Shown here: positions 1 to 52,749 of the stretch, piece by piece
Position numbering within the stretch: the first letter of the stretch is position 1
How the letters are laid out: every line of letters begins with the position of its first letter
From: Macrostomum lignano
Lineage: Eukaryota
Direction: 5' to 3'
Length of the DNA stretch: 64,000 bases
NCBI GenBank assembly: GCA_002269645.1
Contig: NIVC01001804.1
Coordinates: forward strand, 42,978-106,977
Notes under the pieces: generated by a model
The model's input: the letters and a program-made list of their open reading frames with translations, nothing else
Database searches by the model: none
Told to the model about the DNA's origin: nothing
Program-made: the position numbers and the translations under genes

Positions 1-415
1 AGCTGACTTGGCGTGAAAGCTGGTCAACTTTCTGTGGCACAACACGATACAGGCTGTTTCTCATCCAAACAGGGTTCCTCTGCAAGTGGTCGCTCACATT
101 TGTCATGATAGTACTGAGGTCGAGCTCACGGAAGTTTTTCTCGATGAAATCGCAAACAGTCTGCACGTACAGCGAACCCGTGTTGATGCTTCTAAAGGCG
201 ACTGAGCCTGGACTGTTGGCGTAGCAGACCAGAAAGTCGCTCTCTGGGGTACAGACTGTGAGGTTGTACCTTGTTTCCTCTCGCGAATAGGAAGCAAAAG
301 TTCGATCCTGGCGGCTTCCGCGACCGGCCTGAATGAAGAACACCTTTGGCTTTCCTTCTAGGCTTCGGCAGACAGAGGTCTGTGATGCGATGGTAGTGGC
401 GGTAAAGTCTTCAGC
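1..415 (-). CDS. P1 last exon: caspase C-terminal part, KPKVFFIQAGRG plus small subunit
   Basis: My translation is AEDFTATTIASQTSVCRSLEGKPKVFFIQAGRGSRQD...SDFLVCYANSPGSVAFRSINTGSLYVQTVCDFIEKNF...PQKVDQLSRQVS, with no stop before position 1. It is collinear with 47922-48374. Confidence 0.88.
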
Positions 416-3400
416 CTTTCAATAGTGAATTCCAGTCTAGTCCAGACTTTTGCAAATGCGAGAAACCAATTCTTTTTCAGACAATATTACACTTTGTTTC
501 AATATCATACTCGTACATTTCTATACGGAGCTATTTGAATAACCCTATTATTGCATATATCTAGTAACCATAATAGAAGCTAAGCATGTATTTTTGGCTT
601 ACCTGAAACCTTTCGATCACTTTTCGAATTTCGTAGGGACACCCGTCCCTACCGTAGATGCAGTCGTGGCTGCCGTGCGCCATCAGGAAGCAGACAAAGC
701 TGCCGTGCTTGGCAAGGTCTCGTGACTTTTTAATCTCACTGAGGAAATCATCCAACTGCTCAGTAGTAAGGTCTTTTTTTATCTTGACGATGAAGCGCAG
801 CCTCTCGAATACCCGTTTCGCTTGTTCAACATCATGATCAGAACCCTTACGCTCTGTAATACTGAATGTGATGTCACTTCCGGACTCGTACCTGCTGATG
901 TTGATGATGAGGCAGTAGCCTTGCGGGTCCGTCACTGGATAGAAGTCTCCGTCGAGCCTGGAATGCAGCAGACGCTCAATATACTCGTAATTTTTTATAC
1001 TGACAACAAAAACATAAATTATGTAGTAGCACCTTGGTGGTTGATGTCGAACTATTTTGGCTCGCATAGCTCCGCTGAGGTTTCTAAAAAGTTTTTTTTC
1101 ATTGTCAAAAGGAAATTTATTTGAACTATTCAATGAGTGAATATTTGTTAGCAGTTTTCACTGGACAAATAAAGTAACATCGACTCACAAATCTGCTTCC
1201 TCCGCTTTATCATCTCTTGGTTCTTCCGAATGGTCCGTGACAATTTTTCGCCTAAAATGGTCAAAAAGCTTTGTAGTCTATTAGCTATGCTTTCAGAAGC
1301 TGTGTGTGCTGTAGCTGTGTGCTGTAGCTGTGTGTGCTGTAGCTGTGTGCTGTAGCTGTGTGTGCTGTAGCTGTGTGTGCTGTAGCTGTGTGTGCTGTAG
1401 CTGTGTGCTGTAGCTGTGTGTGCTGTAGCTGTGTGCTGTAGCTGTGTGTGCTGTAGCTGTGTGTGCTGTAGCTGTGTGTGCTGTAGCTGTGTGCTGTAGC
1501 TGTGTGTGCTGTAGCTGTGTGCTGTAGCTGTGTGTGCTGTAGCTGTGTGCTGTAGCTGTGTGTGCTGTAGCTGTGTGCTGTAGCTGTGTGTGCTGTAGCT
1601 GTGTGCTGTAGCTGTGTGTGCTGTAGCTGTGAGCTGTAGCTGTGTGTACTGTAGCTGTGTGTGCTGTAGCTGTGTGTGCTGTAGCTGTGGGTGCTGTAGC
1701 TGTGTGTGCTGTAGCTGTGTGTGCTGTGCTGTAGATGCGTGCTGTAGCTATGTGCTGTAGCTGTGTATGCTGTAGCTGTGTGTCCTGAAGGAACTCACGG
1801 CAGTGCCAGAGGCTCGTTGAAGTAAATCTTGCCTTCGTAACTAAAATTGCAGAGTGGAGTCTGAAGTCAGGGGAATAGAGGATGAGCGCCCTTGCTCCAT
1901 GCTTCACTCTATGTTTTATCGATCTTCATTCTGTTTAACTGTCGAGCTTGCAACTTTCCAATTCTTTACCGTAATAATACAGAAAAGTACTACAAAAACT
2001 GCCCCATTTTACGAGCGTAAGTTAAAACTATTTTTTCACAGCAAAATGCTTGCTGCGCTGAAGTCTCACCATAGACCGTATATTCCATGGGCCACTCACT
2101 ATTAAAACTACTCGTATGTAAAAATTAAACCACTTTAAAGCTCACTTTCAGGGAGGTTAATGACATAGATTTTATTTTCGGGATTTAATCGATCACTTTC
2201 CCGGACATATTGCAAGGATTATTGTATGTACCTAAATAAGCGAGCTTCTCTCTTCTCTTCCTTCGTGACTCGAGAAATTTCTTAATGAAATTTTGTCTAT
2301 GGTAAGAATGTGGGGGCTTCGCCTCTACACCCCCAGCAGGGGCTTCGCCCCCACACCCCAATCCCCAACTTCAACCATAGACATACAAGTACCCCGAAAA
2401 AAGCTGGAAAAATCTTTAGGCCGACCACAGTCGCTGAAAGTTTAAGTTCAGTAGCTGAGGGACATAGAAAGTATTTTTGCAATGGAGAAGAAATATAAAT
2501 TTATTTCAGTTGCACGAAGATACAGAAACTTCACAACCGCTAAAAAGACTGCCGTATATGAAAGTAAGTGAAAAAATTTGACACTTTTCTGTAAAAGCGG
2601 CAAACCTTTTAGGCAGACTTGAATATGCCTCTGCTTCTGCTTCTTGGAAACTCAGAACTTTGTGGTCCTTGACGATGAGTTTTCCGATGACAGCTTGGTT
2701 GCCGAGACAGCAGTTTAGGTCACGCAAGCGCTAATCTTTAATCAAGAACTAACAGAAGCCTTTAGTTGTTGGCACCATGATCTCACGCAGGGCCGTCTGG
2801 AGGTCATTGAACGACTTGCTTCCAGGTTTGTCTGGCGCCGCGCTATCTGCCGATTTTTCGTATAGAGCCGGCGACAGTCGCAGCAGCAAGACTTGAGCTC
2901 GTGCGGCTGGATCCCAGTTGAACAATGCGGCTCCAATCTCAAAGCCAACGATCCAAATTGGCCGTCTCCTCGAGTCTTCCAACCTCAGACATGCCCGACG
3001 TTGGACTCCACTTTGGGTGACGCTCTGGTTATCACTCGGAGTTGCTCGTGACTGGGGGCTGCTTGAAGACACTGCTCCATTGCGGCTTGCAGAAATTGTA
3101 GCCGAATTGGTCCTTGCCTGTGCAAAAGACTTTGTTGGATCCCCTGCTGTCTTGGCTGGCTCCTTGCTCATTGCGTCAGGTTAGAATCGCTGCGACGCCA
3201 ATACTACTACTGAGGCTGTGTTTATTTGAGTTGCAGCTCGCAGCCGATAAACTACGTATATTTCTGCTCAGCCGTAGGCCGTGCTCCAGAGCTTTCTATC
3301 TTAATAAATCTAAATATACTAAATCTCTAATATTTGTTTGTTTGTTTGTTTGTTTGTATGTTTGTCCATAACGCTCTAGAGATTGCAATTCTTCACCGAT

Positions 3401-6400
3401 TTTGATCGCGTTTTCGTCAAAAGATTCGAAATTGTCTAATAATAATAATTGTCTAATATGATTGTGTAAACAATCATAGAAGCGTCATGTAAACAGTCAT
3501 AGAAGCGTCATGGAAGAATAAAAGAAGCGTCATGTAAAAATCAAAAGAAGCGTCATGTCAGACATGAAAGAAGTGTAATGTAAAAATTAAATGAAGCTAT
3601 TGTGCTGTGCTGGGGAGACTTACTGAGATGTCAAGGCTCACGGAGAATAACTGAGATTACGGAGGGGGGTTTCTGAGATGTCAAAGCAAAAGTCAGAAAC
3701 TACTTCAAAGTACATGTACTTTACTCAAATTTTTTATTACATTCTTTGTTGGCTCGCCACGGGGGGGCGCTGATAGAAGAAGAGTCATGTAAAAAAGAAA
3801 AGAAGCACTATGTATACATAAAAGAAGAGTCATGTCGAAGTTAAAAGATTCATTTGGGAATTGCTACGATGTCAAGGCTTGGAGGGAATCGCTATAGTGC
3901 TGTGATTCTTGAAGAAAGAATCACTAAATTGTCAAGGCTTAGGGGAAAAGAATTGCTGAGATTTCAAGGCTTTTATAGGTTGGGTTAAAGTTAGGTTTAG
4001 GTCAGGTTTGGGTTGAGGGTTAGATTTTAGCGGGTTTCAAAGTTAACAGGGGATTTTTCAGATATCGAGGTTTATGGGGGGCATTGCTGACATTTCAAGG
4101 CTTACGGGGGAAATAGCTGAGATGTCAAGGTTCATGGGGGAATAAATGAGATGTCAAGGCTAAAGTCAGAAGCTACATGTAGTCTATTGAAAACTTTTTT
4201 TCATTATTTGTTGGCTCCTCACGGGAGGGAGGGATCGCTGATAGAAAAAGCGTAATGTAAAAAATAAGAAGCTTAATGTCGAAGTTAAGAGATTCATTTG
4301 GGAATCCCTACGATGTCGAGGCTTGCAGGGAATCGCTATAATGCTGTAGTGCTATAATGACTGTTGGAGAGAATTACTGAAATGTCAATGCTTTAGGGTT
4401 AGGGTTAGGGTTAGGGTTAGGGTTAGGGTTAGGGTAAGGTTAGGGTTGGAAGGTTGACAGATTTTTTTTAGATTTCAAGGCTTTTTGGGGGCATTGCTGA
4501 GATGTCAAGGGGGAAGTTGATATGTTAAAGCTTGTGGGGGGGGAATTACTGACATATCAAGGCTTACAAGGGACTTCTGATATATATTGCAAAAAGATTC
4601 TACATGTACTTTATTACAAAGCTTGTACTGCATTTTTGGCTCCCCGACGCTAAGATACTAAGCTAAAAAATACTACTAGCGCTTTACAAACTTATGCAGA
4701 TGTCAGGCTGTAGGGTTAGTGTTCGGGTTGGTATTAGGGTTTAGGTTTAGGGTTAGGTTCAGGGTTATTGCGTTAAGATTCGTGTTAGGGTTAGGGTTAG
4801 AGTAGCTTATAACTTAGCTCATGTAGCTTATTAAAAATGTTTATCATGGAAGCATCATGCAAAAACAATGGAAGCGTCATATAAAAATCATAGAAGCATC
4901 ATGCAACAACCCATGGACAAAATATTGAATTTAGGGTTTTGGTTAGGATTTGGGTTAGTGTTAGAAGTTTGACAGGAGATTTTTTAAGATTTCAAGACTA
5001 CATGTAGCTTATTAAAAAACGCGTATTGCATTTCTTTGGCTCCCCAACGGGGGGCGTAGATTGCTAGTTAGCTTCTAAATTATTATGAGCATAGTAAACT
5101 TCCAACTAAGAAAAATACATTAGCCTGTGTTCTGAATTTTTATGTATGGCCAAGCTACTACAAAAATGTGAAAAATGCCCACTCAGAGCAACTGCAGTCA
5201 GCTGCTCAATATTCAATCATAATTTACAGCACATATAGTTTTCATGCATACATTCTCAGACATTCTCATTCTCAGTCGCCATGAAAACTCACCCACGCAG
5301 CAGCTCAGCCAGTCTCCAGTTTCTCTTTTGTGTGGCCAAGGCTAGCGCAGTCCTATACTTATTGTTCTTCAGGCTCCAATCCGCCCCTGAGTCCAGCAGA
5401 ACCTGACTGACGTGCTGGGGCGCCCAGCAGGTGACTGCCTGTATGAGGGGTGTGTATTCACACTGATTCCTCGCATTGGCGGAGGCTCCGGCAGCCAGCA
5501 GAGCGGAAGCTGCGGCAGAATTGCCATCTTTGACTGCATGATGCAAACAACTGTCAGCAGCAGTATTCGCACAGGTGGGATCACCAAGCTCCACCAGCTG
5601 CTTCCACAGAGCCTCATCACTCCTCCAAGCTTCGTTCATCGCAATATAACCCCGTCTGTCATAAGCATCCATCTCCACCAGCTTCATCCGATCCTCAGCA
5701 TTGAGCTGAGCTACGCCCATCAACGCGGTGAGACCCAAAAAGTCAGGCAGGTCGCAGCTGTCGCGGGTCGCTGCTCGTCGCAGTCCCACCAAGTCGCGCG
5801 CGTTCACCAGCCGCTGCAGCTTCTGTCGATCCGCCTCCTCCTGCAAAGACGAACGGAAACTTTGAGCACAGCTACTCAGCTGCTGCAACATCAGCACCGC
5901 AGATTCCACTCACCTGAGCTGTCAGACCGGAGATAGTGCCATATTCATCCACAACTAGCCGCATCTCCCTGCAACAGCAAAAATGAGCAGCGATGCGAAT
6001 ATGCAATTTTCTAAAATATGACAATTCCGATTGACAAAAAATTTACTTTAATAAGGTCTAGATAATTTTTCATGATAAATTTAGTAAATGGAAATTCCTA
6101 CTTATCTGAGCTGCTTACAGATGGAGTTTCCAAGAGGACTGCAGCAGCTCTGCAACAATCAGCATTGGCGAGAGCGCATCCGACTTCTCACACGCAGCTC
6201 ATTTTCCATTTCTGCAGCATTAGTTTCCTTCCATCTCACAATGTCTCACAAAGCACTCACGCACAGCCTCCCAGTTCTCCATCTGCAGCTCAACCCACAC
6301 ACTCTCACTGCACACCGAGGCCCTACAGCTTCCATTCTTGACTGAGATCAACCGGCACCCCATTGGCTGGGAGGCAGCCAGCTTATCAAGCAGCGAACTG

Positions 6401-7245
6401 CTCACTCACCGCTTGATGTAGCTGGCCAGCTCTGAGTGGCCGCTGAGCCTCGCCAGTGCGGACGCTGTCCAATCTTCGAGATCTTTCAGTCTGAGCAGCC
6501 GCGACCTCTTCGAGTTTCTGTGCTGTCTGCATTCATTGAACCTGTCCTGCCTCAGCAGGTGCAGCAGGTGCTTGGCGCATTTCCAGCTTCCAGTCCGCGC
6601 CGCCTCCATCAGCGGAGTGGCGCCGTTGTCATTCCGCAGCCACTTCGCATCGAACGACAGCAGCGTCAGCAGCCGCAGGTGGTCCCGCCGGGCTGCCAGG
6701 TGCGCAGCCGTGTTGCCGTTCGCGTCAGCTGCCTTGGGGATTGCGCCCAGCTCAAATAAGTACAAGATGCACTTTTCAGTGTGCACGGGAGTCTCAGGAG
6801 CGTCGGCCACCAGCATGAGGACGGTCCGACGATCTGCATCAGCGCTGGTGACCAGCTGGCGCGTTGCCAGCCGCCGCACCTTGCCGAAGTCACCTTGGAT
6901 GACGAGCTTGGCGAGAGTGTGGAGATCGGCTGGTGAGTCTCCGACGCTTTCCCGGTTGCTGGGGTCCGGCTTAGTGAGTTGCTGCAACTGCAATTAAAGC
7001 ATCTCTAACCTAAGTGCAAATCTTAGCACTGAAGTATTTTAGGAGACTTGAATTTACGAGCGTATGAGCTACTGGAGTAGCTGAGAGATGACTAATTTAT
7101 TACTAATTATTAGTTACTAATTACAGATTACTAGTCAATTTCAATAACTTCAACTTACCGCTCTGTCAGAGAACATGGTTATTTTTTCGCTTTCTGACGA
7201 AGTGCTTGACGTGCTCAAAGAGCTTGAACTTGAAGAGCTGGACAT
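1..7245 (-). CDS. P1: ankyrin-ankyrin-pseudocaspase (catalytic Cys to Gly), 8 exons, last exon runs off the window start
   Basis: Manual exon chain: 7245-7159 (87 nt), 6987-6410 (578), 5968-5914 (55), 5840-5293 (548), 1840-1799 (42), 1251-1189 (63), 1083-603 (481), 415-<1. All junctions are AG/GT and the phases match (0,2,0,2,2,2,0). The frame is open throughout (756 codons inside the window). The structure is the same as P3. Confidence 0.78.
603..1083 (-). CDS. P1 exon 7: caspase large subunit (peptidase C14)
   Basis: Contains PQGYCLIINISRY, ERKGSDHDV and SFVCFLMAHG (catalytic His). Donor is CAG|GTAAGC at 603/602; acceptor is TTTTAG|A at 1084/1083. Confidence 0.88.
1293..1785 (+). repeat. 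13/15-bp minisatellite (TG)nCTGTAGC in P1 intron 5
   Basis: Tandem TGTGTGCTGTAGC / TGTGTGTGCTGTAGC units. The same repeat occupies the equivalent intron of P3. Confidence 0.95.
2506..3171 (-). mobile_element. Degenerate LTR-retrotransposon gag-like fragment inside P1 intron 4
   Basis: WIVGFEIGAALFNWDPAARAQVLLLRLSPALYEK...SFNDLQTALREIM resembles retrotransposon gag and is broken by stops. Recognised by eye only. Confidence 0.4.
3309..5067 (+). mobile_element. Non-autonomous Helitron-like element in P1 intron 4
   Basis: The 5' end is A|TCTAAATATACTAAA followed by a TTTG microsatellite. The 3' end is a hairpin (GCTCCCCAACGGGGGGC), then GATTGCTAG|T at 5064-5068. The termini match the family at 21056-35974. 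Confidence 0.65.
4393..4445 (+). repeat. Interstitial telomeric-type (TTAGGG)n tract
   Basis: Seven perfect TTAGGG units (4393-4434), then TAAGG and one more unit. Degenerate units also occur at about 3985-4030 and 4710-4800. Confidence 0.9.
5293..5840 (-). CDS. P1 exon 4: second ankyrin-repeat domain (ANK-A)
   Basis: DSCLHHAVKDGNSAAASALLAAGASANARN and YTPLIQAV motifs. Acceptor CTTTGCAG|GAG; donor GG|GTGAGT, which contains the ORF-track stop. Confidence 0.88.
6410..6987 (-). CDS. P1 exon 2: first ankyrin-repeat domain (ANK-B)
   Basis: NTAAHLAARRDH and GATPLMEAARTG motifs. 578 nt, as in all five copies in the window. Donor CG|GTGAGT. Confidence 0.88.
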
Positions 7246-8862: not shown

Positions 8863-9522
8863 ATGGCGGCAGAGTTCATGGCTTGCAAAGTTTGGTTGCA
8901 GAGTTCATGGCTGAACTGTCTGCATTGGTTGATGAGCCGTTCTGCCTTCTGCCGTTCATCAAGCCTGCAGCTGACCAAGTTGTCCAGTTACTTTGATCGC
9001 TCGACTGGAGAACGACTACAGGATGAAGTGATTTACACTTTATTGTATGTCTTGGGAGAGCGCGGTCAAGAGCACCTCCAACACCTTCGTCAGAGAGACA
9101 TACTCGTAGAAAAAGAAGACGGCGACGGCAAGAAGTATTACGAGCTACCTAACCTCAGAACCAAGAACCAGAGTGCCAATCCAGTCAAGGCCAAAGGTTT
9201 CAACACAAAGCAAGCGAGAATCTATGGCGGTCAGTATGAACTCATTAAGACCTACCTTCAAGTCCTGCCCAACGAAACCAAGGACAATTCGTTTTTTCCA
9301 AGACCGATGGCAAATAAAGAAGGACAGCTGCAGTTTTCAACTAAGCAGGTTCGTGGGATCAATTGGTTAGGATCGTTCATGACTCGATTAAGCACCCTGT
9401 GTGAGCTCAGCAAAAAGTATACGAACCATTGCATTCGAGTAATCCATAGCTACTGGGAAAACACTTGGTACTTGGCAGTTTCTGTTGGGAGCGCGAGGTT
9501 TTCCAGCACGCGGTTCATCACG

Positions 9523-9540
<18 letters not shown>
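8863..9540 (+). mobile_element. Crypton-like tyrosine recombinase fragment (DUF3504/KCTD1-ZMYM-like), truncated
   Basis: GERGQE...TKN...RIY...YELIKTYL...FFPRP...GINWLGSFM...KKYTNHCIR matches the Crypton YR pattern. The final catalytic His/Tyr segment is absent. Confidence 0.6.
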
Positions 9541-9553
<13 letters not shown>

Positions 9554-9700
9554 TGACTGACTGACTGACTGACTGACTGACTGACTGACTGACTGACTGA
9601 CTGACTGACTGACTGACTGACTGACTGACTGACTGACTGACTGACTGACTGACTGACTGACTGACTGACTGACTGACTGACTGACTGACTGACTGACTGA
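9528..9700 (+). repeat. (ACTG)n microsatellite, about 43 units
   Basis: A pure tetranucleotide run at the point where the Crypton fragment and the Mab-21 reading frame converge. Confidence 0.97.
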
Positions 9701-10822
9701 TGGTCGGACCAAAAGCAAAACTTCCACGCCGAGTCGCGGCTGCTCAGATGCCACATCACGAACTCCACAGTCGCTTCAGTCGCCGACTTCTCACGAGACC
9801 AAGCGATGCCTCTGCTTACCGAGTGACCTGAGCACGAGCTCACGACTCTCTCTGCAGTTTCTCGGTCATCAAACTTCAGGCAAGCCAGCGCTCTGAGAGC
9901 CTCCCGTGCTGAGAGGGCGCAGTCTGGCAGTCTGGCAATCAGCTCTGTGAGCGACTCCTGAGATCGCTGGCTGCAGTCACTGCGCGAGAGACGCACCAGA
10001 CACTCTCTCACCACGTCGTAGATCTGATAGTACTCGAGAGCACTGGACTTCGCGAGGGGCATCGGACTCAGATCCGGCAGGATTTGGAACGGGTGGAAGT
10101 AGAATGTGCCTGAGTCGCTCACAGGTCTGAGACTGCCGATGAACTGCTGCAGCAGTTGGGGCAGCCGATCGATTACTGTTCTCAGTGTGCTCATGATGCG
10201 GTCCAAATGCTGGTCCGCTCTCTCCTTAGCCGCACCCTTGAGGTAGATGGCCGCATCGCTGAGAAAGAAATGGTTCATGATGCGACCCCGAGATCGGTCA
10301 GGTGTGTCAGGTGTTTGTCCTGCTCTCGGCTCTTCTCCACACAGTCGAGCAGCATCTGCAGCGACTGTCTCGTGAGACTCACGAGGTTCTCCTTCTTCCA
10401 CTGCTCGACCGGCGTCTCATCCACCATTCGGAAGGTGATGGTCTTCACGTGGTAGGACTTCAAGCCTCGCTGATTGAAGCCATCTTTGTGACAGATGACC
10501 TTCTTGACCAGGTATTTGAGTGTGACGAACAGTTGGCCTTGCAGGGTAGTGAGACTTCGCAGCATCCGGTTCTCCAGGAAGCTGGTGCTCACGCGGAGCT
10601 CTTCGCCTCCTCGGTCAGGAGAGGCTGCGTACACCACGTGACAGGGCGATGAGTCGGAGGTGAGAACCTCCTGGAGAGCCTCCAGCACAGGATGGGGGAT
10701 GTTGGAGATGCGGTTTGGCAGCAGCGGCGCGATGGGCGGGTAGCGGCAGAGACGGCATGCAGAGACATTGTCCAGCGCTGGCTTCAGTGTGCATCCGGGC
10801 GTCGGATAAGCAGGATTTGAGG
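9700..10822 (-). CDS. Mab-21 domain and helical C-terminal region, split across two frames
   Basis: ORF 10275-10901 has CHVV...LRVSTSFLENRMLRSL...LFVTLKYLVKK...LKSYHVKTITFRMVDETPVEQWKKENL. The expected continuation GRIMNHFF lies in ORF 9526-10401, a different frame. Confidence 0.78.
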
Positions 10823-19258: not shown

Positions 19259-19839
19259 TCTTTACGTTTGGTAGCAAATACTCGTTACATGCAGCTCGTG
19301 TTTCGTTTAAATGTACTCATATATACGATGTGAGCAGTCCTGCTCATCGGCTCACTTTTCCCTGTAATTTTTGTCTCCGTCTCTCGTATGCATCTCAGGC
19401 GTACTGTAGCTATTGCCAACTGCTCATCAAGGAGTGACCAAGCAGAAAGCAATCTAATTTTGTCTGGATGAGCAGTATTTCAGTGGCGACAGAACTCAAA
19501 CAAAATACTGGTTTATTATTTAAAAGCTTTTGATTAACTACTTTAGTTTAGAAGAATTAGTCACAGGGTTATAAACTTTACACGGAAACGAAAAATATCA
19601 TAAAAATAAAATGAAACGATAATTGAGTACTTGAAGGTTAAGCAGATTGACTTGAGTAGACATCAGAGTCAAATAACCATTAGTCATATTCAGAAGGTAA
19701 CACGATCGGTGTTTGAACAGCAGAAAAGTGTCCACATTTATCAATCAAGCTGCCAATACGAGTATATCAAATATTCCATCATTAAAGACAGCTCCGTGAC
19801 ATCGCCGCTACCTGAAGAAACTCACAGCGGCTTCAAAGG

Positions 19840-39222: not shown

Positions 39223-40015
39223 CGCTCGATGTAGCTGGCCAGCTCTGAGTGGCCGCTGAGCCTCGCCAGGTCCAACGCCGTCCGACCCTCGCGATCCTGC
39301 AGTCCGAGCAGCCGCGACCTCTTCGAGTTTCCGTGATTCAAGCATTCATTGAATTTAAACTGCCTAAGCAGGTGCAGCAGGTGCTTGGCGCATTTCCAGC
39401 GTCCAGTCCGCGCCGCCTCCATCAGCGGAGTGGCGCCGTTGTCGTTCCGCAGCCACTTCGCATCGAAAGACAGCAGCGTCAGCAGACGCAGGTGGTCCTG
39501 CCGGGCTGCTAGGTGCGCAGCCGTGTCGCCGTTCGCGTCAGCCGCCTTGGGGTTCGCGGCCAGCTTAAATAAGTACAAGATGCACTTTTCAGTGTGCACG
39601 GGAGTCTCAGGAGCGTCGGCCACCAGCATGAGGACGGTCCGACGATCTGCATCAGCGCTGGTGACCAGCTGGCGCGTTGCCAGCCGCCGCACCTGTCCGA
39701 AGTCACCTCGGATGACGTCGTGGGCGAGAGTATGGAGATCGGCTGGTGAGTCTCCGACGCTTGCCCGGTTGCTGGGGTCCGGCTGAGTGAGTTCCTGCAA
39801 CTGCAATTAAGCACTAAAGCTGCACATTGAAACATGTGAGTGAGAACCAAAGATATTTTTCAAATGGATTGCTTTAACTCACAAAAAAATAATATTTCAA
39901 ACAAAAGAATGCTACAAAACTTACATTCTTACAAAGAATCACCCTATGTACAATATAAGGTAAAACTTACCTTGTAATCAGAATAGTATATCACCTTAGA
40001 GGCCGCACTGCCCAT
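39223..40015 (-). CDS. P2 exon 1 (40015-39971) and exon 2 (39800-39223), copy 2
   Basis: Same exon sequences and splice sites as copy 1. Confidence 0.7.
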
Positions 40016-42014
40016 TTTTAAAGACTCGAGCAGTTAATCAACTGGAAAATCAAAATGCATGAGCAGCTGCGTCAACTCAAACTCAACAGATTATATAGCG
40101 GCCTCAGAAGACATTGTCAGAGAGATGCACTGCCTGCGCCTCATTGGCTGAATGCAAACCCAGTGTCTCTGTTTCTGATTCTCTGCCGTACAGAATGCAT
40201 ACTACTCACGGCAGTAGAAGTTAGATTGTAGATATTATTTTCACTTTCGCATAATACTTTTTTCTGAATTTCTCTGTTGTAATACATGGCATACAATGAT
40301 AAAACAACAACAACAAAATACGTGCTCCGCGTCACAGTGCGCGCCTCAAAGGTAGGTCTCGAATGAACGCCCCGCCGCCGACCGAATCTGGGGCGCCGGC
40401 GTCAGCCAGCAGGCAGTCGACGAATCGCCGAGTGCGGGCTTGCCCCCCCCCCCACCGGTAGGGTGCCTGCAGCGTCAATAGCAGCACCTCCTGCATCGGT
40501 TGTGGGAAGTACGTTCGGCTCTGATGATGTGGAATGCAAGCTGGAGTCGCCGACGGCGCAACAGGTCGCTTGGACGAACCAGGCCGTCATGGTGATAGAA
40601 AGCTGCGTTGGTCACTCGCTCGTTGCCGATCCTGAAGGCAGCGCTTAGCAGGTCAGCGTGCGCCGCGTCAACTTGTTGCTTGAGCAACTCCATCAGCGTC
40701 CAGGTCTCGGCGTTGTACAACAGGACGGTCTCGATCACCGCCTGGAAAAACGCCAGGCGGTTTGCAGCGAGGTTGTCTCGAACCTGGGACCTTACGCCTA
40801 GCCTAAACCTAGTGCCTACAGTGCGGCTACTCCGCCTATTGATGGAAAGGCGAGAAAATCAGCCATAAACCTTCGGCACTGCAGTCAAATACATAGCAGT
40901 GATGGGCTGCTCAGTGCGCAGGCAGAGCCAATGCACAGTTGAGTGAAATCTATAAATAGCAATTGTCTATGCAGTCCGCCAGTCAGCCAGGGTCAGAATG
41001 TACACACGCAGCCAGAATGTACACATGCTGCACTGAGCATTTTTCTCTCCCTTGCACACTGCAGCCAGTATTGAAACTTACACAGTGGAGAGAGAAAATT
41101 TATGGCGCAATGTCAATTGGAGTTTCAATTCAAGTTAAATAGAGTTTTCCTATCAGTTGGCACTGGCGCAATCATTAAAATTGGCTGTGAAGTTTTTTCA
41201 CTGCGCGCAGGCTGATACAATTTGCATTAAAAAAGCCTATTTAAAACAGTTTTTCAAATCCAATTAGCATCCCTTTAGCATTAAAGCAGATATAAGAAAT
41301 TTTAACTGTCTTTTTTTCCAGACAATTTTAAATCTTTTGGCGAAAACGCGATCAAAATTGGTCAAGAATTGCACTCTCTAAAGCGTTACAGACAGACAAA
41401 CAGACAAACAGACAAACAGACAAACAGACAAACAGACAAACAGACAAACAGACAAACAGACAAACAGACAAACAGACAAACAGACAAACAGACAAACAGA
41501 CAAACAGACAAACAGAAAACAGACAAACAGACAAACAGATCTTAGCGATTTAGTATAGGTGGAATGGATGGATGGATGGAGGATGGATGGATTTCTAATT
41601 ATCTGAGCTGCTCGCAGATGGAGTTTCTAAGAAAATCAGAAAAAATCAGCATTGGCGAGAGCGCATCCGATTTCTCACACGCAGCTCATTTTCCATTTTT
41701 GCAGCATGATTTTCCTTCCACCTCACAATGTCTATCAAGGCACTCACGCACAGCCTCCCAGTTCTCCATCTGCAGCTCAACCCACACACTCTCACTGCAC
41801 ACCGAGGCCCTACAGCTTCCATTCTCGACTGAGATCAACCGGCACCCCATTGGCTAAGAGGCAGCCAGCCAATCACAGCTCTCGCCCATCAAGCAGTCAG
41901 TCAGAGACAAGCTCAGCTGACTGGCTCTGATTGGCTGGCCTGAGACTGCAGCACTGGCCACCGCAGCAGAATGCTGCAAAACTTGATGGACACAGCAGCG
42001 AACTGCTCACTTAC

Positions 42015-42807
42015 CGCTCGATGTAGCTGGCCAGCTCTGAGTGGCCGCTGAGCCTCGCCAGGTCCAACGCCGTCCGACCCTCGCGATCCTGCAGTCCGAG
42101 CAGCCGCGACCTCTTCGAGTTTCCGTGATTCAAGCATTCATTGAATTTAAACTGCCTAAGCAGGTGCAGCAGGTGCTTGGCGCATTTCCAGCGTCCAGTC
42201 CGCGCCGCCTCCATCAGCGGAGTGGCGCCGTTGTCGTTCCGCAGCCACTTCGCATCGAAAGACAGCAGCGTCAGCAGACGCAGGTGGTCCTGCCGGGCTG
42301 CTAGGTGCGCAGCCGTGTCGCCGTTCGCGTCAGCCGCCTTGGGGTTCGCGGCCAGCTTAAATAAGTACAAGATGCACTTTTCAGTGTGCACGGGAGTCTC
42401 AGGAGCGTCGGCCACCAGCATGAGGACGGTCCGACGATCTGCATCAGCGCTGGTGACCAGCTGGCGCGTTGCCAGCCGCCGCACCTGTCCGAAGTCACCT
42501 CGGATGACGTCGTGGGCGAGAGTATGGAGATCGGCTGGTGAGTCTCCGACGCTTGCCCGGTTGCTGGGGTCCGGCTGAGTGAGTTCCTGCAACTGCAATT
42601 AAGCACTAAAGCTGCACATTGAAACATGTGAGTGAGAACCAAAGATATTTTTCAAATGGATTGCTTTAACTCACAAAAAAATAATATTTCAAACAAAAGA
42701 ATGCTACAAAACTTACATTCTTACAAAGAATCACCCTATGTACAATATAAGGTAAAACTTACCTTGTAATCAGAATAGTATATCACCTTAGAGGCCGCAC
42801 TGCCCAT
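42015..42807 (-). CDS. P2 exon 1 (42807-42763) and exon 2 (42592-42015), copy 3
   Basis: Same exon sequences and splice sites as copy 1. Confidence 0.7.
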
Positions 42808-43089
42808 TTTTAAAGACTCGAGCAGTTAATCAACTGGAAAATCAAAATGCATGAGCAGCTGCGTCAACTCAAACTCAACAGATTATATAGCGGCCTCAGA
42901 AGACATTGTCAGAGAGATGCACTGCCTGCGCCTCATTGGCTGAATGCAAACCCAGTGTCTCTGTTTCTGATTCTCTGCCGTACAGAATGCATACTACTCA
43001 CGGCAGTAGAAGTTAGATTGTAGATATTATTTTCACTTTCGCATAATACTTTTTTCTGAATTTCTCTGTTGTAATACATGGCATACAAT

Positions 43090-43850
43090 GATAAAACAAC
43101 AACAACAAAATACGTGCTCCGCGTCACAGTGCGCGCCTCAAAGGTAGGTCTCGAATGAACGCCCCGCCGCCGACCGAATCTGGGGCGCCGGCGTCAGCCA
43201 GCAGGCAGTCGACGAATCGCCGAGTGCGGGCTTGCCCCCCCCCCACCGGTAGGGTGCCTGCAGCGTCAATAGCAGCACCTCCTGCATCGGTTGTGGGAAG
43301 TACGTTCGGCTCTGATGATGTGGAATGCAAGCTGGAGTCGCCGACGGCGCAACAGGTCGCTTGGACGAACCAGGCCGTCATGGTGATAGAAAGCTGCGTT
43401 GGTCACTCGCTCGTTGCCGATCCTGAAGGCAGCGCTTAGCAGGTCAGCGTGCGCCGCGTCAACTTGTTGCTTGAGCAACTCCATCAGCGTCCAGGTCTCG
43501 GCGTTGTACAACAGGACGGTCTCGATCACCGCCTGGAAAAACGCCACCCTCTGGCGGTCAGGTAGGCCCTTGGATTGCAAGACTGCCCTCACAGAATAAA
43601 AGGCAGCCCATGACGTCAAGAACTAGACCGCCGAGGAAGTCGAACTGCTGACAACACGAAAGCTCCGTCGCCGGGCCATCTGCGCCTTGACTCATAAATG
43701 CAACCTCGATGTCGTCCGGCACGCAGGGCACAACGGTTTTCTGTGTATTGACCACCAGACCGACAGCTTGTACAGTTGTTTCTGGGCGCCCTCGACCGTT
43801 CAGGACAGCAGGACGAGATCGTCAGCGTAGCCAAGCACGCTGAGCCGCCT
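43090..43850 (-). mobile_element. Degenerate RTE 3' fragment (shorter copies at 37510-37967 and about 40305-40759)
   Basis: VIETVLLYNAETWTL...VDAAHADLL and SVLGYADDL-like sequence homologous to 21304-22100; (TTG)n tail; frameshifted. Confidence 0.85.
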
Positions 43851-47921: not shown

Positions 47922-48374
47922 CTAAACTTTCCGAGCTCTTTCTGGATCGAAGCTAACAAGTCGTGAAAGCTGGTCGACCTTCTGCGGCGTAAGATGAAAT
48001 AGGCCGTCTTCCATCCGAACTTTCGTTTGCTGCAAGTGGCCGCTTACCACAGTCATGATGGTATTTAGGTCGAGCTCACGAAAGTTTTCCTCGATGAAAT
48101 CGCAAACAGTCTGCACGTACACCGAACCCGTGTCGGGGCTTCTAAAGGCGGCTGAGCCTGGAATATTGGCATAGCAAACCAAAACGTCGCCCTTTTCGGG
48201 AAGAACTGCAGTGTTGCACACTGGAGCGGGTGCCTCATCCGTTTCTACACGAGAATTGGGCAGAACAACTTGGTCGCGATGGCTTCCGCGACAGGCCTGG
48301 ATGAAGAACACCTTTGGCTTTCCTTCGAGGCTGCGGCAGACAGACGTCTGTGAAGTGGTGGTGAAGTCTTGGGC
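47922..48374 (-). CDS. P3 last exon: QACRG, VETD linker, small subunit
   Basis: AQDFTTTSQTSVCRSLEGKPKVFFIQACRG...SRVETDEAP...GDVLVCYA...FRSPDTGSVYVQTVC. Confidence 0.92.
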   Translation of the reverse strand, partial: AQDFTTTSQTSVCRSLEGKPKVFFIQACRGSHRDQVVLPNSRVETDEAPAPVCNTAVLPEKGDVLVCYANIPGSAAFRSPDTGSVYVQTVCDFIEENFRELDLNTIMTVVSGHLQQTKVRMEDGLFHLTPQKVDQLSRLVSFDPERARKV

Positions 48375-51300
48375 CTTTGAAACAATAAGTATGCAGTGTA
48401 CACTAGACTTTTCTAAATGCGAAAAACAAGTTCATTCTACGTGACCTACGCGCACTCGTTACCTTGGCCGTTAATTTAAACTTTCGCTTCAAATGACCCT
48501 TCTATTGATTCAATATTATGCATTTCTATTTGGGAGAATTTTAATATTACAATTTTTGTTTATGTCTTGATAAAAATATAAAAGATGATATTCTTGGCAA
48601 TACGCTCGTAGTTGGGCTTACCTGGAACCTATCAGTCAGATATTGAATGTGGTAGGGCAACCCGTCCCTACCGTAGATGCAGTCTTGGCTGCCGTGCGCC
48701 ATCATGAAGCAGACAAAGCTGCCGTGCTTGGCAAGGTCAGGTGATTTCTTTATCTCACTGAGGAAATCATCTATCTCCGCAGCAGTGAGGTTCTCTTTTA
48801 TCCAGACGATGAAGCGCAGACTCTCGAATACCTGTTTTACTCGTTCAACATCGCGAACCGAACCTTGACGCTCTTTGTGACTGAATGTGATGTGACTTCC
48901 GGAGTCGTACCTGCTGATGTTGATGATCAGGCAGTAGCCTTGCGGGTCCGTAACTGGATAGAAATTTCCTTTGAGCCTGGAATGCAGCAGATGCTCAATA
49001 TCTCGTATACATGTACTTTCTATTGTATCAAGGCCAAACAATACAATGTAGTGGCACCTTGAGCGTTGAGGTTGGACTGGTCTGCCACGCACAGCTTCTG
49101 TAGGATTTCTAAAAGATTTTCATATTGACATAGGAATAAATTCAATATAGGCTGGTATATTGAATATTTGTAAGCACTTCCCCAAGACCACGAGAAAAAT
49201 ATCTTTAACTTTGACTCACCGATCGGGTTCATCATCGCTTGGTTCCTCGCCAGGGGCATGGTCCGTGAAAACGTTTCGTCTGAAATGGCCAAAAAGGGTA
49301 AGCAGTTCTCTCAGCTGTGTGCTGTAGCTGTGTGCTGTAGCTGTGTGTGCTGTAGCTGTGTGTGTGTGTGTGTGTGTGCTGTAGCTGTGTGTGCTGTAGC
49401 TGTGTGCTGTAGCTGTGTGCTGTAGCTGTGTGCTGTAGCTGTGTGTGCTGTAGCTGTGTGTGCTGTAGCTGTGTGCTGTAGATGTATGCTGTAGCTGTGT
49501 GTGCTGTAGCTGTGTGTGCTGTGGCTGTGTGTGCTGTGGCTGTGTGTGCTGTGGCTGTGTGTGCTGTAGCTGTGTGTGCTGTGGCTGTGTGTGCTGTGGC
49601 TATGTGTGCTGAGGCTGTGTACTGAGGGAACTCACGGCAGTGCCAGAGGCTTGTCGAAGTAAATCTTGCCGTCGTACCTAAAAGGCAGTGCGGTTTCTGA
49701 AGTCAGGGAAAGTTGCGTGAGCCGATGCTCTTTGTTAAAATCTATCTGTTTTATCGATTGTCATTCTGTTGAATTTGTGGTTATCGTGCAGCAGCCGTAA
49801 ATTACGAGCTTTATACTCAACAGCATTGAAAAAGTCGCCACTCTGCACCAGTGAACAATTTCTCTTAAACTATTCTGAAATCAAAAAAATACGAGAAAAC
49901 TGAGGGCTAGCTTTAATTCGTCCTCGCACCGTCCGATTCCCCCCACTTCATTCCTCAACCCAAGTATGTGGCGTGGCGTAGCCAAAGTTGCATTACTAGC
50001 AAGACTGAGAGACTTCATCTGCACACTCGAAGGTGGCGACCATAGACGGAATCTTTCAGATGCTGCTGAGTATATATTGTTACTATGGTTTACCATAATA
50101 CTTGTATGTCTATGGTTGAAGTTGGGATGGGGGTGTGGGGGCGAAGCCCCCACATTCTTACCATAGAAAAAAATTTCATTAAGAAATTTCTCGAGTCACG
50201 AAGGAAGAGAAGAGAGAAGCTCGCTTATTTAGATACATATAATAATCCTTGCAATATGTCCGGGAAAGTGATCGATTAAATCCCGCAAAATAAAATCTAT
50301 GTCAATAACCTCCCTGAAAGTGAGCTTTAAATTGGTTTAATGACATTAACTGCCCGCTAATTTGCATTAAAGCAAGTTTGACTCCTGCAAGCGGGCTTAA
50401 ACGTAGTCTATGGGATTAAAAAGCAAGAATAAGTGCCCAGCGGGCACAAAGGTCATGGTACAATGCAAATTAGCGGGCAATTATGTCATTAACTGCCCGC
50501 TAATTTTGTCCCACTTTGTCAAGGACACAAATGTCTATGTTTATGGCACAATAATAGTAATACCCATGCTTTGCGGGCGTTAATGAGAAATCCTCCTAAC
50601 GCCGCCCTCTGATTTTCCCATTACGCTCGTAACGCCCTTCAAGCATGGGTATTAATGTACTATCACTCCTTGTCTTTGAGTTATTTTAATAATTGAATCA
50701 TTTACTGTTTGTCAATGATAGATCAAAGTCAGAGAGACATTCTCAGTCGCCATGGAAACTCACCCACGCAGCAGCTCAGCCAGTTCCTTCCTACCCTCCT
50801 TTTTGGCCAAATCCAGCGCAGTCCTGCCGCGCCCGTCCTTCAGGCTCCAATCCACCCCCGAGTCCAGCAGAACCCGACCGACTGCGGCGGCGGTGGCGGG
50901 GGGCGCATGGATGGCTGCCCACGAGAGGGCCGTGGATTCCCACTGATTCCTGGCATTGGCGGAGGCTCCGGCAGCCAGCAGAGCGGAGGCTGCGGCAGAA
51001 TTGCCAGCCCTGGCTGCATGGTGCAGACAACTGCAAGCCCATATATTCGCACAGGTGGGGTCACCCAGCTGCACCAGCTGCTTCCACAGAGCCTCATCAC
51101 GGCACGAGCTGTTCCGAGCTGCGTACATCAGTGCGGTGAAACCCCAGTTGTCAGGCAGGTCGCAGCGGCCGCGGGTCACCGCTCGCCGTAGCCTCGCCGA
51201 GTCGCCCGCTTCGGCCAGCCGCTGCAGTTCCTTTCGATCCGCCTCCTCCTGCAAAAGCAAGCGGGAAATTTGAGCACAGCTGCTCAGCTGCAGCCGCATC

Positions 51301-52749
51301 GGCACCGCAGATGCCGCTCACCTGGGCTGTCAGGCCGGAGATATAGCCATTTTTTCCCACAACCAGCCGCATCTCCCTGCAACAGTAAAAAAGTGAGCGG
51401 CAAATTTGCAATTTTCCTAAATCTGACAACTGGCCGCCAAAATTAAAATTTATTATTTACCATAGAAGTTTTATGGTAAATTTTAGAAAATATAAACTGG
51501 CAATTAGGCGGTTAAGGCCCCTTCGGGGGACCTGTACCTCCTTGTATGCCCCAGAGTATTTGTGAGACATTTGTGAAAAAGCATCCCCCAGATGGCAAGT
51601 ATATCCCAAAAACAAGCACCCGGATCCCCGATATAAATGCAACATAGTTTTGAAGCTAAAAATGGAATAAAGAATTTAAATAAACTACATGTAGCTTCTG
51701 AGCTTTAAGTCTTGACATCTCAGCAATTCCCCATGAGCCTTGACATCTCAGCAATTCCATTATGAGCCTTGTCATCTCAGCAATTCCATTATGAGCCTTG
51801 ACATCTTTGCAATTGGCCTTGACATCTCATCAATTCCCCCCAAGGTTCGCTTTTAAATGTGTCACACAGACACTCACTCTTGGTATATATTGGATTCCTA
51901 ATTATCTAATTAGCTGCTCACAGATGGACTTTTCAAAAGAACTGCAGCAGCGAACTGCTCACTCACCGCTCGATGTAGCTGGCCAGCTCTGAGTGGCCGC
52001 TGAGCCTCGCCAGGTCCGACGCCGTCCGACCCTCGCGATTTTTCAGTCCGAGCAGCCGCGACCTCTTCGAGTTTCCGTGCTGTCTGCACTCATTGAACAT
52101 TGCCTGCCTGAGCAGGTGCAGCAGGTGCTTGGCGCATTTCCAGCTTCCAGTCCGCGCCGCCTCCATCAGCGGAGTGGCGCCGTTGTCGTTCCGCAGCCAC
52201 TTCGCATCGAACGACAGCAGCGTCAGCAGCCGCAGGTGGTCCCGCCGGGCTGCCAGGTGCGCAGCCGTGTCACCGTTCGCGTCAGCCGCCTTGGAGTTCG
52301 CGCCCAGCTTAAATAAGTACAAGATGCACTTTTCAGTGTGCACGGGAGTCTCAGGAGCGTCGGCCACCAGCATGAGGACGGTCCGACGAGCTGCATCAGC
52401 TCTGGTGACCAGCTGGCGCGTTGCCAGCCGCCGCACCTGTCCGAAGTCACCTCGGATGGCGTCGTGGGCGAGAGTCTGGAGATCGGCTGGTGAGTCTCCG
52501 ACGCTTTCCCGGTTGCTGGGGTCCGGCTGAGTGAGTTTCTGCAACTGCAATTGAGACACCTGGGAGTTACATCAAAGTACTGAAATTTTTTGAGTCAACT
52601 TGCACAAGCAACCGGAGTCGCCGACTGTAGATAATTACTACTACATGTATTCAGTTTCTGTCGCTTCAACTTACCGCAGAGTTAGGGAAGTCGGTAATTA
52701 TTTCTTCGTCTTCTGACGATGAATCAGAATCGTCTGAGGAGCTTGACAT
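47922..52749 (-). CDS. P3: ankyrin-ankyrin-caspase, 8 exons, 744 aa, catalytic His/Cys intact
   Basis: Exons: 52749-52675 (75 nt), 52544-51967 (578; alternative acceptor 52559), 51376-51322 (55), 51248-50764 (485), 49677-49636 (42), 49279-49220 (60), 49108-48622 (487), 48374-47922 (453). Total 2235 nt = 745 codons, all AG/GT with matching phases. Contains MAHG and QACRG. Confidence 0.82.
48622..49108 (-). CDS. P3 exon 7: caspase large subunit
   Basis: PQGYCLIINISRY, ERQGSVRDV, SFVCFMMAHG; donor CAG|GTAAGC. Confidence 0.9.
49314..49622 (+). repeat. (TG)nCTGTAGC minisatellite in P3 intron 5
   Basis: Same unit as 1293-1785 in a shorter array. Confidence 0.93.
50764..51248 (-). CDS. P3 exon 4: ANK-A domain
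   Basis: CSCLHHAARAGNSAAASALLAAGASANARN; donor GG|GTGAGT. Confidence 0.87.
51967..52544 (-). CDS. P3 exon 2: ANK-B domain
   Basis: 578 nt; DTAAHLAARRDH, GATPLMEAARTG; donor CG|GTGAGT. Confidence 0.87.

Follow-up and report, generated by a model that had tools for sequence, protein, structure and literature searches.

A window of 64,000 nucleotides of Macrostomum lignano DNA (contig NIVC01001804.1, assembly GCA_002269645.1) carries an ANK-Mab21 (cGAS-like) gene flanked by two ANK-caspase genes. In the interpretation that we favour, though well short of certainty, the locus is a fast-evolving birth-and-death cluster, rich in transposons and satellites, made up of M. lignano-specific ankyrin genes of cell-death or innate-immune type. 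The Mab21 gene is a pseudogene on this contig, the caspase encoded directly downstream of it is dead, and the active caspase gene is located ~33 kb away. A functional cGLR–caspase link at the locus is possible but unproven. Ankyrin-bearing genes would have reached this arrangement through segmental duplication, unequal crossing-over, gene conversion and exon shuffling, and selection for an operon-like synthase-effector unit would not be required.

Organisation of the locus

The four elements described in a previous, sequence-only reading are all present, in the minus-strand order gene A (active ANK-caspase), MGSAAS+ANK fragments, ANK-Mab21 and gene B (Cys→Gly ANK-caspase) (Table 1). Its statement that no unrelated host gene separates them also holds: the intervals contain a LINE reverse-transcriptase ORF, reverse-transcriptase fragments, ~10 kb of satellites and one transposon-like ORF.

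Table 1. Features of the ankyrin locus (window positions).
Feature	Position	Strand	Evidence or remark
Gene A, intact ANK-caspase	47922..52749	-	Pfam Ank + Peptidase_C14, translations, spliced model
Gene A, approximate exons 1-4	52749-52675, 52544-51967, 51387-51322, 51260-50763	-	
Gene A, approximate exons 5-8	49676-49636, 49279-49220, 48976-48622, 48347-47922	-	
Gene A, catalytic His	48702-48688	-	MAHGS in p20
Gene A, catalytic Cys	48299-48285	-	QACRG in p10
Three tandem copies of a 2793-bp unit	35151..43546	-	~99% identical; self-BLAST
MGSAAS start exons, N-myristoylation-type start	42807, 40015, 37222	-	MG-start scan
ANK1 exons of the 2793-bp units	42592-42014, 39800-39222, 37007-36429	-	tblastn with P0029 and P0030
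Satellite block between ANK1 fragment units and ANK2 exon	23465..33600	.	17/18-bp + 23-bp arrays
Non-LTR retrotransposon (LINE) reverse transcriptase	21304..23724	-	806-aa ORF; Pfam RVT_1, E = 6e-29
Orphan 'EMRLVV...' mini-exon + ANK2-type exon	20346..20979	-	85% identical to gene A ANK2 exon
ANK-Mab21 gene	15054→9711	-	three exons joined as in M. lignano homologues P0002, P0007
ANK-Mab21 exon 1	13007..15054	-	683-aa ORF; ~17 homogenised 99-bp ankyrin repeats
ANK-Mab21 exon 2, start of nucleotidyltransferase core	11741..12089	-	
Exon 2 motifs GSYSEGWG; SDIDV	11928-11905; 11865-11851	-	
ANK-Mab21 exon 3, Mab-21_C helical domain	9711..10823	-	Pfam Mab-21_C 24.9 bits vs cut-off 24.1
Exon 3, third catalytic Asp	10781-10764	-	PALDNV
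(TCAG)n microsatellite	9529..9700	-	replaces Mab21 coding 3' end
Transposon-like 225-aa ORF, between truncated Mab21 gene and gene B	8863..9540	+	unknown family; no Pfam match
Gene B, ANK-pseudocaspase	1..7245 (7245→<1)	-	continues past left window edge
Gene B, approximate exons 1-4	7245-7156, 6987-6409, 5970-5914, 5843-5292	-	
Gene B, approximate exons 5-8	1839-1798, 1250-~1190, ~1060-597, 382-<1	-	
Gene B, conserved His	683-669	-	MAHGS
Gene B, Cys→Gly	331-317	-	QAGRG

Modelled with 8 exons and GT-AG introns, gene A has an uninterrupted reading frame of 687 aa, in the domain order ANK1, ANK2, caspase p20 and caspase p10; one junction, in the ANK2-to-linker region, is probably mis-picked. Gene B corresponds to the annotated product P0028 (731 aa) and to P0332 from the window's own contig. 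It begins with a Met/poly-Ser exon of its own and bears, in intron 4, a 1.76-kb insertion (3309-5068) absent from the sister contig NIVC01003438.1. The two genes are paralogues (74-94% nucleotide identity by self-BLAST), and the much lower dS of the ANK1 exon (0.08 against 0.27-0.49 in the other exons) points to gene conversion. Only ANK and Peptidase_C14 domains were recognised in the ANK-caspases, with no SAVED, CARF or STING-like sensor.

Each 2793-bp unit includes an MGSAAS start exon ~200 bp upstream of its ANK1 exon, together with a reverse-transcriptase fragment. What is triplicated here is a 5' fragment from a third member of the family: the elements of the proposed 'myristoyl-ANK' gene exist, but do not obviously form a complete gene. 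Downstream of the orphan ANK2-type exon, a search for linker, caspase and kinase exons detected none. The ankyrin arrays of the Mab21 and caspase types share no detectable close similarity, as had been noted. The accompanying proposal that the cluster is not a simple tandem duplication stands for the Mab21 gene relative to the caspase genes, but the two caspase genes and the ANK fragments are duplicates.

In the ANK-Mab21 gene, the N-terminus encoded by exon 1 resembles P0007, and the consensus donor of this exon (GG|GTAAGT) overlaps its stop codon. The catalytic GS/DID/D motifs are retained. Comparison with the loci L001 and L003 reveals a 4-bp deletion after position 10316 in exon 3, corresponding to the loss of a single GACAGACA unit from a direct repeat, which leads to a frameshift and a stop at ~10278. 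Homology to intact Mab21 copies ceases at 9701 and the last ~110 codons are missing. The frameshift, the 3' loss, the paralogy of genes A and B and the fragmentary nature of 'myristoyl-ANK' had escaped the previous reading.

Family expansion and recurrence of the linkage

The best matches are all from M. lignano, and each of the two gene types is part of a very large family specific to the species. Mab21-like protein clusters number at least 27 in one search and at least 45 in another, with 178 representatives at E ≤ 1e-3 (50%-identity clustering), and there are at least 10 ANK-caspase clusters. Many M. lignano ANK-kinases carry the same ANK1/ANK2 module (~80% identity); their kinase domains resemble MAP3K5, PAK and TNIK (STE group) and their ankyrins are generic. 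The dN/dS values of 0.5-0.8 are compatible with relaxed constraint or diversifying selection. The top Foldseek matches of the Mab21 family are cGAS, MB21D2 and MAB21L1, and its profile retrieves cGLR1 and cGAS from the PDB (E = 2e-5). The GS/DxD/D catalytic set is present in most members, and five M. lignano members of the family have been cloned as cGLRs (Li et al. 2023, bioRxiv 10.1101/2023.02.22.529553).

A conserved linkage between the two families is not observed at 8 paralogous M. lignano loci: caspases are absent within ±10 kb of all five other ANK-Mab21 loci, and Mab21 genes within ±10 kb of all three other ANK-caspase loci, in a survey of short flanks in a sparsely annotated assembly. 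No caspase lies within 10 kb of the closest Mab21 paralogues (P0001, 84-91% identical), which are solitary. The families do cluster with themselves, with three Mab21 copies at L002, two each at L005 and L006, and two caspases at L010. If ~100-200 Mab21 genes and a few dozen caspase genes are assumed in a genome of several hundred Mb, a rough estimate based on uniform placement, and not on a genome-wide survey, puts the number of adjacencies expected by chance within 10 kb at ~0.1-0.3. Mab21-like and ANK-caspase modules have come to lie side by side twice independently, at this locus and in a family of fusion genes, and some selected association is therefore possible.

The fusion family consists of conserved single genes, located elsewhere in M. 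lignano and ordered ANK–Mab21–ANK–caspase, in two lineages 34% identical to each other; one ANK–Mab21–kinase gene is also encoded. These fusions provide independent evidence, of the Rosetta-stone type, that Mab21-like and caspase domains can work together. The Mab21 catalytic residues are degenerate in all of them, the kinase fusion included. This speaks against a diffusible nucleotide messenger in those fusions and makes direct coupling within one protein the more likely link there.

Alternative explanations of the arrangement

The sister contig is colinear with the window (96-99.6% identity). It carries one copy of the 2.8-kb unit against three in the window (comparison with L004), lacks the 1.76-kb insertion and has a mosaic counterpart of gene A (P0029). 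Its Mab21 copy, in which both Mab21 exons are open and the ORF ends in a stop codon, also adjoins the pseudocaspase, and the pair may be functional on this haplotype. The damage in the window could be artefactual, if PacBio contig errors or the collapse of a repeat had produced both the 4-bp deletion and the truncated 3' end of a locus that is really intact. Both contigs belong to the same long-read assembly and the break point is at a microsatellite, a frequent site of assembly failure. We nevertheless consider this unlikely: loss of one repeat unit is typical of real slippage and not of single-base long-read indels, several other structural variants distinguish the contigs, and neighbouring coding sequence, gene B and the ANK exon among it, is open and error-free. 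It is about equally doubtful that the pair is a relic of fission or fusion, that is, a split form or precursor of the fused genes. If it were, the adjacency would reflect common descent with the fused family, possibly with read-through transcription. Domain order and strand are indeed those of the fusions P0286, P0291 and P0211, and the distance from the Mab21 3' end to the start of gene B is just 2.5 kb (4.5 kb in the sister contig). However, identity to the fused family is only 25-31% for Mab21 and ~25% for the caspase, the closest Mab21 paralogues are solitary, gene B has a first exon of its own while the intact Mab21 ORF terminates at a stop codon, and the window Mab21 retains the catalytic residues lost in all fusions.

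In RNase L, an established precedent, the ankyrin domain binds 2-5A, a product of the OAS family. The sequence-only reading had raised the possibility of a functional module like CBASS. Spelled out, the ANK-cGLR would sense a ligand and make a cyclic or linear oligonucleotide that binds and activates the neighbouring ANK-caspase, perhaps, as in RNase L, via its ankyrins. In its favour, the genes share a strand and are not interrupted by any unrelated host gene, the catalytic motifs persist in the window's Mab21 and in most family members, Li et al. 2023 handled members of the family as cGLRs, and the fusion genes indicate that Mab21-like and ANK-caspase modules functionally co-occur in M. lignano. 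This module is nonetheless improbable, even more so than the two explanations above. Its synthase gene has lost both its reading frame and its 3' end, the adjacent caspase is dead while the active one is ~33 kb away, the linkage is not repeated at the 8 paralogous loci, the ANK-caspases show no recognisable sensor domain (SAVED, CARF, STING or other), the ANK-kinase relatives resemble STE-group kinases with generic ankyrins and not RNase L, and the Mab21 active site is degenerate in the fusions. The evidence fits the weaker version of the same proposal, a shared ankyrin locus of immune type.

Relation to known systems and possible roles

CBASS and type III CRISPR include nucleotide-activated proteases such as SAVED-CHAT and Lon-SAVED/CalpL. 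They have in common with the present locus a CD-NTase-superfamily gene near a caspase-fold protease gene, and the module, if it were real, would be an animal counterpart of these systems. However, the M. lignano locus is eukaryotic and consists of separate spliced genes, its effector is devoid of SAVED or CARF, its linkage is not conserved and its synthase copy is broken. With OAS–RNase L the shared concept is a cGAS/OAS-superfamily nucleotidyltransferase together with ankyrin–kinase-like or catalytic effectors; ANK-kinase and ANK-caspase proteins are numerous in M. lignano, but there is no specific sequence similarity to RNase L. In the CASP8-CASP10-CFLAR cluster, active caspases with a DED prodomain lie beside the pseudo-caspase cFLIP. 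By analogy, the M. lignano locus likewise appears to combine an active caspase and a Cys-less paralogue, with open frames, through local duplication, although its prodomain consists of ankyrin repeats and not DED.

The ankyrin-bearing animal cGLRs described by Li et al. (2023), a minority architecture, share with the M. lignano family the Mab21/cGAS fold, the GS…DxD…D set and the N-terminal ANK array. In comparison, the window copy is damaged and the family has diverged strongly: the Pfam model of the Mab-21 N-terminus is unmatched and Mab-21_C is barely above its cut-off. The main text of that study reports no activity for the M. lignano proteins, and caspase or kinase fusions are reported neither there nor in the supplementary files examined. 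The ANK-caspases of Platyhelminthes, first seen in Schistosoma, have the same ankyrin prodomain, which replaces CARD or DED. They were described as restricted to parasitic flatworms, M. lignano having only a kinase-prodomain caspase (Krasovec et al. 2024, PMC11463336). In contrast, the clusters found here (at least 10), assigned by domain architecture, belong to a free-living species, and add a Cys→Gly paralogue and myristoylation-type starts.

By reference to what is known of these families, the ankyrin prodomain probably serves in recognition or recruitment, to which N-myristoylation would add membrane targeting in MGSAAS members, and induced proximity would activate the caspase. For gene B a cFLIP-like role is probable, as a pseudo-enzyme that partners its active paralogues or serves as their decoy. 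A nucleotide signal may be made by the intact ANK-cGLR paralogues, which keep GS, DxD and D. True coupling of Mab21-like to caspase or kinase domains in M. lignano is seen within one polypeptide, whose Mab21 domain is degenerate; this suggests that the domain controls the effector directly in cis, as a sensor or scaffold, and not through a diffusible messenger.

Composition of the cluster and its flanks

All strong protein matches to the window genes are from M. lignano. The minus strand carries, in order of decreasing coordinate, an ankyrin (ANK)-caspase gene (gene A), a series of ankyrin exons with MGSAAS starts, an ANK-Mab21 gene and a second caspase gene (gene B, whose recorded product in GCA_002269645.1 is P0332). 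Every element of the order proposed in the sequence-only reading is thus present, with corrections to its members. That reading also held that no unrelated host gene separates them, and indeed none is recognisable in Pfam scans of intergenic ORFs; the ankyrin arrays of the Mab21 and caspase genes are, as it supposed, without close similarity to each other. Pfam searches of the intergenic and flanking ORFs (2749-3171, 8863-9540, 43266-43619, 54367-54753 and 62.6-63.4 kb) yielded nothing assignable to a host gene; the sole match was to TPR in the right flank. The cluster is bounded on the left, as seen on the sister contig, by a Sema-domain gene and on the right by TPR/HAT-like and gag-like ORFs.

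Features of the cluster, its flanks and the loci compared (window positions unless a locus is named)
Feature	Position	Strand	Description
Gene A	52749→47922	-	Eight exons, GT-AG introns, open 687-aa frame; one splice junction of the model, in the ANK2-to-linker region, probably mis-picked
MGSAAS-ANK units	35151-43546	-	Three 2793-bp units, ~99% identical, each with one start exon (MGSAAS) and one ANK1 exon
Orphan ANK2-type exon	20979-20346	-	15 kb beyond the units, past 10 kb of satellites and the LINE ORF
LINE ORF	21304-23724	-	Uninterrupted 806-aa non-LTR retrotransposon ORF (RVT_1)
Satellite arrays	23465-33600 and 55843-59180		17/18-bp, 22-bp and 23-bp satellites
Tandem duplicate	15490-19264		1.9-kb segment, 98% identity, directly upstream of the ANK-Mab21 start
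ANK-Mab21 gene	15054→9711	-	683-aa ankyrin exon and two Mab21 exons
Ankyrin array of the ANK-Mab21 gene	13085-14786		~17 homogenised copies of a 99-bp unit, ~89% identity
Gene B	7245→<1	-	Paralogue of gene A, 74-94% nucleotide identity
Insertion in gene B	3309-5068		1.76 kb, in intron 4
Right flank	56907-57332	-	TPR/HAT-like ORF
Right flank	61946-63350	+	ORFs resembling retroelement gag, CCHC-like motif
Left flank, sister contig, beyond gene B	L003:19121-25978		Sema-domain gene
DM9-domain gene	L006:14628-17125		Adjoins a tandem pair of Mab21-like genes
Fusion lineage 1	L011:8089-13648, contig NIVC01002235.1		P0198/P0286/P0291
Fusion lineage 2	L012:10001-18304, contig NIVC01000031.1		P0211

The same assembly contains a contig, NIVC01003438.1 (loci L003 and L004), whose sequence runs colinear with the window. 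Since it is 96-99.6% identical, this sister contig is counted as a haplotig or recent duplicate, and its use as independent evidence of synteny was rejected.

Gene A combines Pfam ankyrin repeats with both halves of Peptidase_C14 (E = 1e-19 and 1e-13). Its caspase fold has a complete His-Cys dyad (MAHGS and QACRG), and its ankyrin prodomain lies N-terminal to the caspase domain, as in the Platyhelminth ANK-caspase clade. Gene B retains the fold (Peptidase_C14, E = 1e-42) and the histidine (MAHGS). However, it has QAGRG instead of QACxG, a substitution shared by its annotated product on the sister contig (P0028), and the absence of the catalytic cysteine from this pentapeptide identifies it as a pseudo-caspase. 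The sister contig lacks the insertion found in intron 4 of gene B. The ANK1/ANK2 module, the two ankyrin exons of the window caspase genes, recurs in many ANK-kinases (P0031, P0034-P0038) at ~80% identity. ANK-caspases have been described as a flatworm family restricted to parasitic species (PMC11463336). This restriction does not fit M. lignano, a free-living species that encodes at least ten ANK-caspase clusters.

The element previously described as "myristoyl-ANK" represents either a disrupted gene or several 5' gene fragments. The repeated unit occurs three times in the window and once on the sister contig, and the orphan ANK2-type exon is followed by no linker, caspase or kinase exon. The start at the three window sites conforms to the N-myristoylation type (MGxxxS/T/A: Met-Gly and a small residue at position 6), and similar starts occur in the M. 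lignano proteins P0029 (MGSAASS) and P0042 (MGSGSS). From family knowledge, the MGSAAS starts are predicted to direct myristoylation. The LINE, to which fragments at 37.5, 40.3 and 43.1-43.9 kb are related, may still be active. The satellites give rise to numerous spurious "ORFs" in which LAIWG and CLLSGG abound.

The Mab21 family and its copy in the window

Structural modelling and sequence profiles show that the Mab21-type genes are, as a family, cGAS-like. An AF2 model of P0001, an 84% identical homologue of the window gene (pLDDT 77, pTM 0.79), retrieved only cGAS, MB21D2 or MAB21L1 among its top 30 Foldseek matches (E ~1e-4, TM to target 0.37-0.54), and the family profile matched Drosophila cGLR1 and cGAS chains in the PDB (E = 2e-5). 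Both lines agree with a cGAS-like bilobed nucleotidyltransferase (NTase) fold followed by a Mab-21 C-terminal helical domain. Pfam Mab-21_C scored just above its cut-off on the window ORF (24.9 against 24.1 bits), and the N-terminal (NTase) model found no match even at E ≤ 1, so that the fold is assigned from the structural model and the profile. The window gene carries the full catalytic set of GS, [DE]x[DE] and third acidic residue (GSYSEGWG, SDIDV and PALDNV); these motifs align with G49, S50, D71, D73 and D128 of the family, which are invariant or near-invariant in stand-alone members. D128 lies ~58 residues upstream of LRVSTSF, with which the cGAS motif WRLSFS is aligned in the profile match; in cGAS, the spacing from the third Asp to WRLSFS is similar. 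The stretch from the DxD dyad to the third Asp includes family-invariant His and Cys residues (H84, C91, H104 and C136 in P0001), whose window counterparts fall within exon 12089-11741 or directly after it. These residues are candidate zinc ligands and recall the zinc thumb of cGAS.

Members of this family have been treated as cGAS-like receptors (cGLRs), with ANK-cGLR listed as a minority architecture, and five from M. lignano have been cloned (Li et al. 2023, bioRxiv 10.1101/2023.02.22.529553); the main text of that preprint reports no activity for these five relatives. Literature on Macrostomum together with cGAS or STING yielded nothing useful on the presence of STING in M. lignano.

In the 683-aa ankyrin exon of the window gene, the terminal consensus donor and the stop codon overlap, and the exon is joined to the two Mab21 exons exactly as in the M. 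lignano proteins P0002 and P0007. The P0007 homologue has only ~5 repeats; the window array is far longer and more homogenised, which points to a recent in-place expansion. The duplicated segment upstream of the gene has an internal 32-bp repeat array and a strong positive GC skew.

The Mab21 coding sequence of the window is not intact relative to those of L001, a close paralogue, and L003, on the sister contig. Where both of these have GAGCAGGACAGACAAACACC, the window has GAGCAGGACAAACACC, a loss of 4 bp corresponding to one unit of a GACA repeat, which shifts the frame and leads to a stop ~12 codons further on. The last exon of L001 and L003 continues uninterrupted for ~110 codons, whereas homology in the window ends at 9701, from which point a (TCAG)n run and then an unassigned transposon-like ORF follow. 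The missing C-terminal ~110 residues are absent from the whole window (tblastn, word size 2, E up to 10). The (TCAG)n run might be taken for an intron following AWKFCF, a reading rejected since L001 and L003 read through this position in one exon; on the sister contig both Mab21 exons are open throughout. The frameshift and the lost C-terminus thus mark the proposed "synthase" as a pseudogene on this contig, unless the assembly is wrong there. An assembly error at the break is unlikely, because the deletion looks like a product of real slippage and several other structural variants distinguish the two contigs.

Linkage of Mab21 and caspase genes

The sequence-only reading proposed that the linkage might reflect a functional module or at least a shared ankyrin-sensor immune locus. 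Both families are very large in M. lignano: Mab21-like sequences form dozens of clusters at 90% identity (178 representatives at 50%), ANK-caspases at least ten clusters, and many ANK-kinases of M. lignano carry the same ANK1/ANK2 module as the ANK-caspases. The surroundings (±10 kb) of five other ANK-Mab21 genes (L001, L002, L005, L006 and L007) and three other ANK-caspase genes (L008-L010) were compared. No caspase was found within this distance of any of the five, nor a Mab21 gene near any of the three. L001, the closest paralogue of the window Mab21 gene (91% nucleotide identity), stands alone; each family occurs in tandem arrays of its own kind at the loci compared, among which the arrangement of the window recurs only on the near-identical sister contig. 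At L006, a tandem pair of Mab21-like genes is adjoined by a DM9-domain gene; proteins with this domain have been linked to immunity in invertebrates.

Neither a sensor domain in the effector nor a conserved co-localisation of synthase and effector, both features of CBASS-like systems, was found. In gene A, P0028 and the fusion protein P0198, Pfam and PADLOC recognise only ANK and Peptidase_C14, with no SAVED, CARF, STING or similar domain, and PADLOC models for CD-NTase, SAVED, CARF and CHAT gave ankyrin-based matches only. Kinship of the ANK-kinase and ANK-caspase relatives with RNase L was considered and rejected, the matches being to STE-type kinases and generic ankyrins. Because the partner is missing at all eight loci, the families form arrays of their own kind, no nucleotide-reading domain is present and the relatives are not RNase L-like, the Mab21-caspase adjacency is, on this evidence, a one-off outcome of duplication and shuffling. 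The region is dynamic, as shown by homogenisation of the ANK1 exon among copies (dS 0.08 against 0.27-0.49 in other exons), by the mosaic nature of the positional counterpart of gene A on the sister contig and by copy numbers that differ between the two contigs, with transposon and satellite sequence filling the gaps. The earlier proposal is supported in part, as a shared ankyrin "immune-type" cluster; for this locus, a sensor-messenger-protease module is neither established nor the preferred reading.

Fusion proteins and a possible pathway

Some of the Mab21-family matches are encoded by single annotated genes that run ANK–Mab21–ANK–caspase and fall into two lineages. At L011, the Mab21 C-terminus and the next ankyrin domain are in one frame, with nothing but an in-frame GT-AG intron of 90 bp between them, and short canonical introns then lead to the caspase exon. 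P0211 and P0286, one from each lineage, can be aligned colinearly across 1,287 residues (34% identity), the junction included, so the architecture is old and maintained. No description of this family was found in the literature checked. Related combinations are P0299 (PAA66964.1), an ANK–Mab21(degenerate)–protein kinase, and P0067, an ANK–kinase–caspase.

Every fusion reads DxN or DxG at the DxD dyad and Ser or Thr in place of the third Asp; the His and Cys of the fused caspase are retained. Judged from these substitutions, the fused Mab21 domain cannot be the synthase. More likely, it is a sensor or scaffold acting in cis; that it reads a nucleotide from catalytically competent stand-alone ANK-cGLRs is an attractive speculation. 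These proteins provide genuine evidence that Mab21-fold domains and caspase or kinase effectors work together in M. lignano.

Family knowledge suggests how the components might act. Ankyrin prodomains would recruit or recognise partners, MGSAAS starts would be myristoylated and caspases would be activated through induced proximity. Gene B probably acts as a cFLIP-like pseudo-enzyme partner, since its reading frame is unbroken on either contig although Cys→Gly has removed the catalytic residue, and intact ANK-cGLRs would produce a nucleotide signal. A further reading is a STING-independent cGLR-to-caspase (and cGLR-to-kinase) pathway of cell death or immunity, in which the nucleotide signal of catalytically competent ANK-cGLRs would be read by ANK-caspases or ANK-kinases, or by degenerate "pseudo-cGLR" Mab21 domains fused to caspases or kinases. 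This pathway is quite improbable. If it exists, both the window cluster and the fusion genes would be marks left in the genome by a single system, an animal analogue of bacterial defence by a CD-NTase plus a protease.

The locus is mostly an example of the fast turnover of lineage-specific, ankyrin-tagged cell-death families in a repeat-rich flatworm genome. Its components belong to known kinds, of which the cluster and, above all, the fusion family represent new variants. For the evolution of cGAS and CBASS, the interest lies in the huge expansion of ANK-cGLRs in a flatworm, in the occurrence of ANK-caspases in a free-living flatworm, and in conserved proteins that unite Mab21–ANK–caspase or Mab21–kinase in one polypeptide and whose NTase sites are degenerate. 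RNAi works in M. lignano, and transgenesis was reportedly described in it by Wudarski et al. in 2017. The species is a tractable model for the role of cGLR-fold domains wired directly to proteases and kinases.
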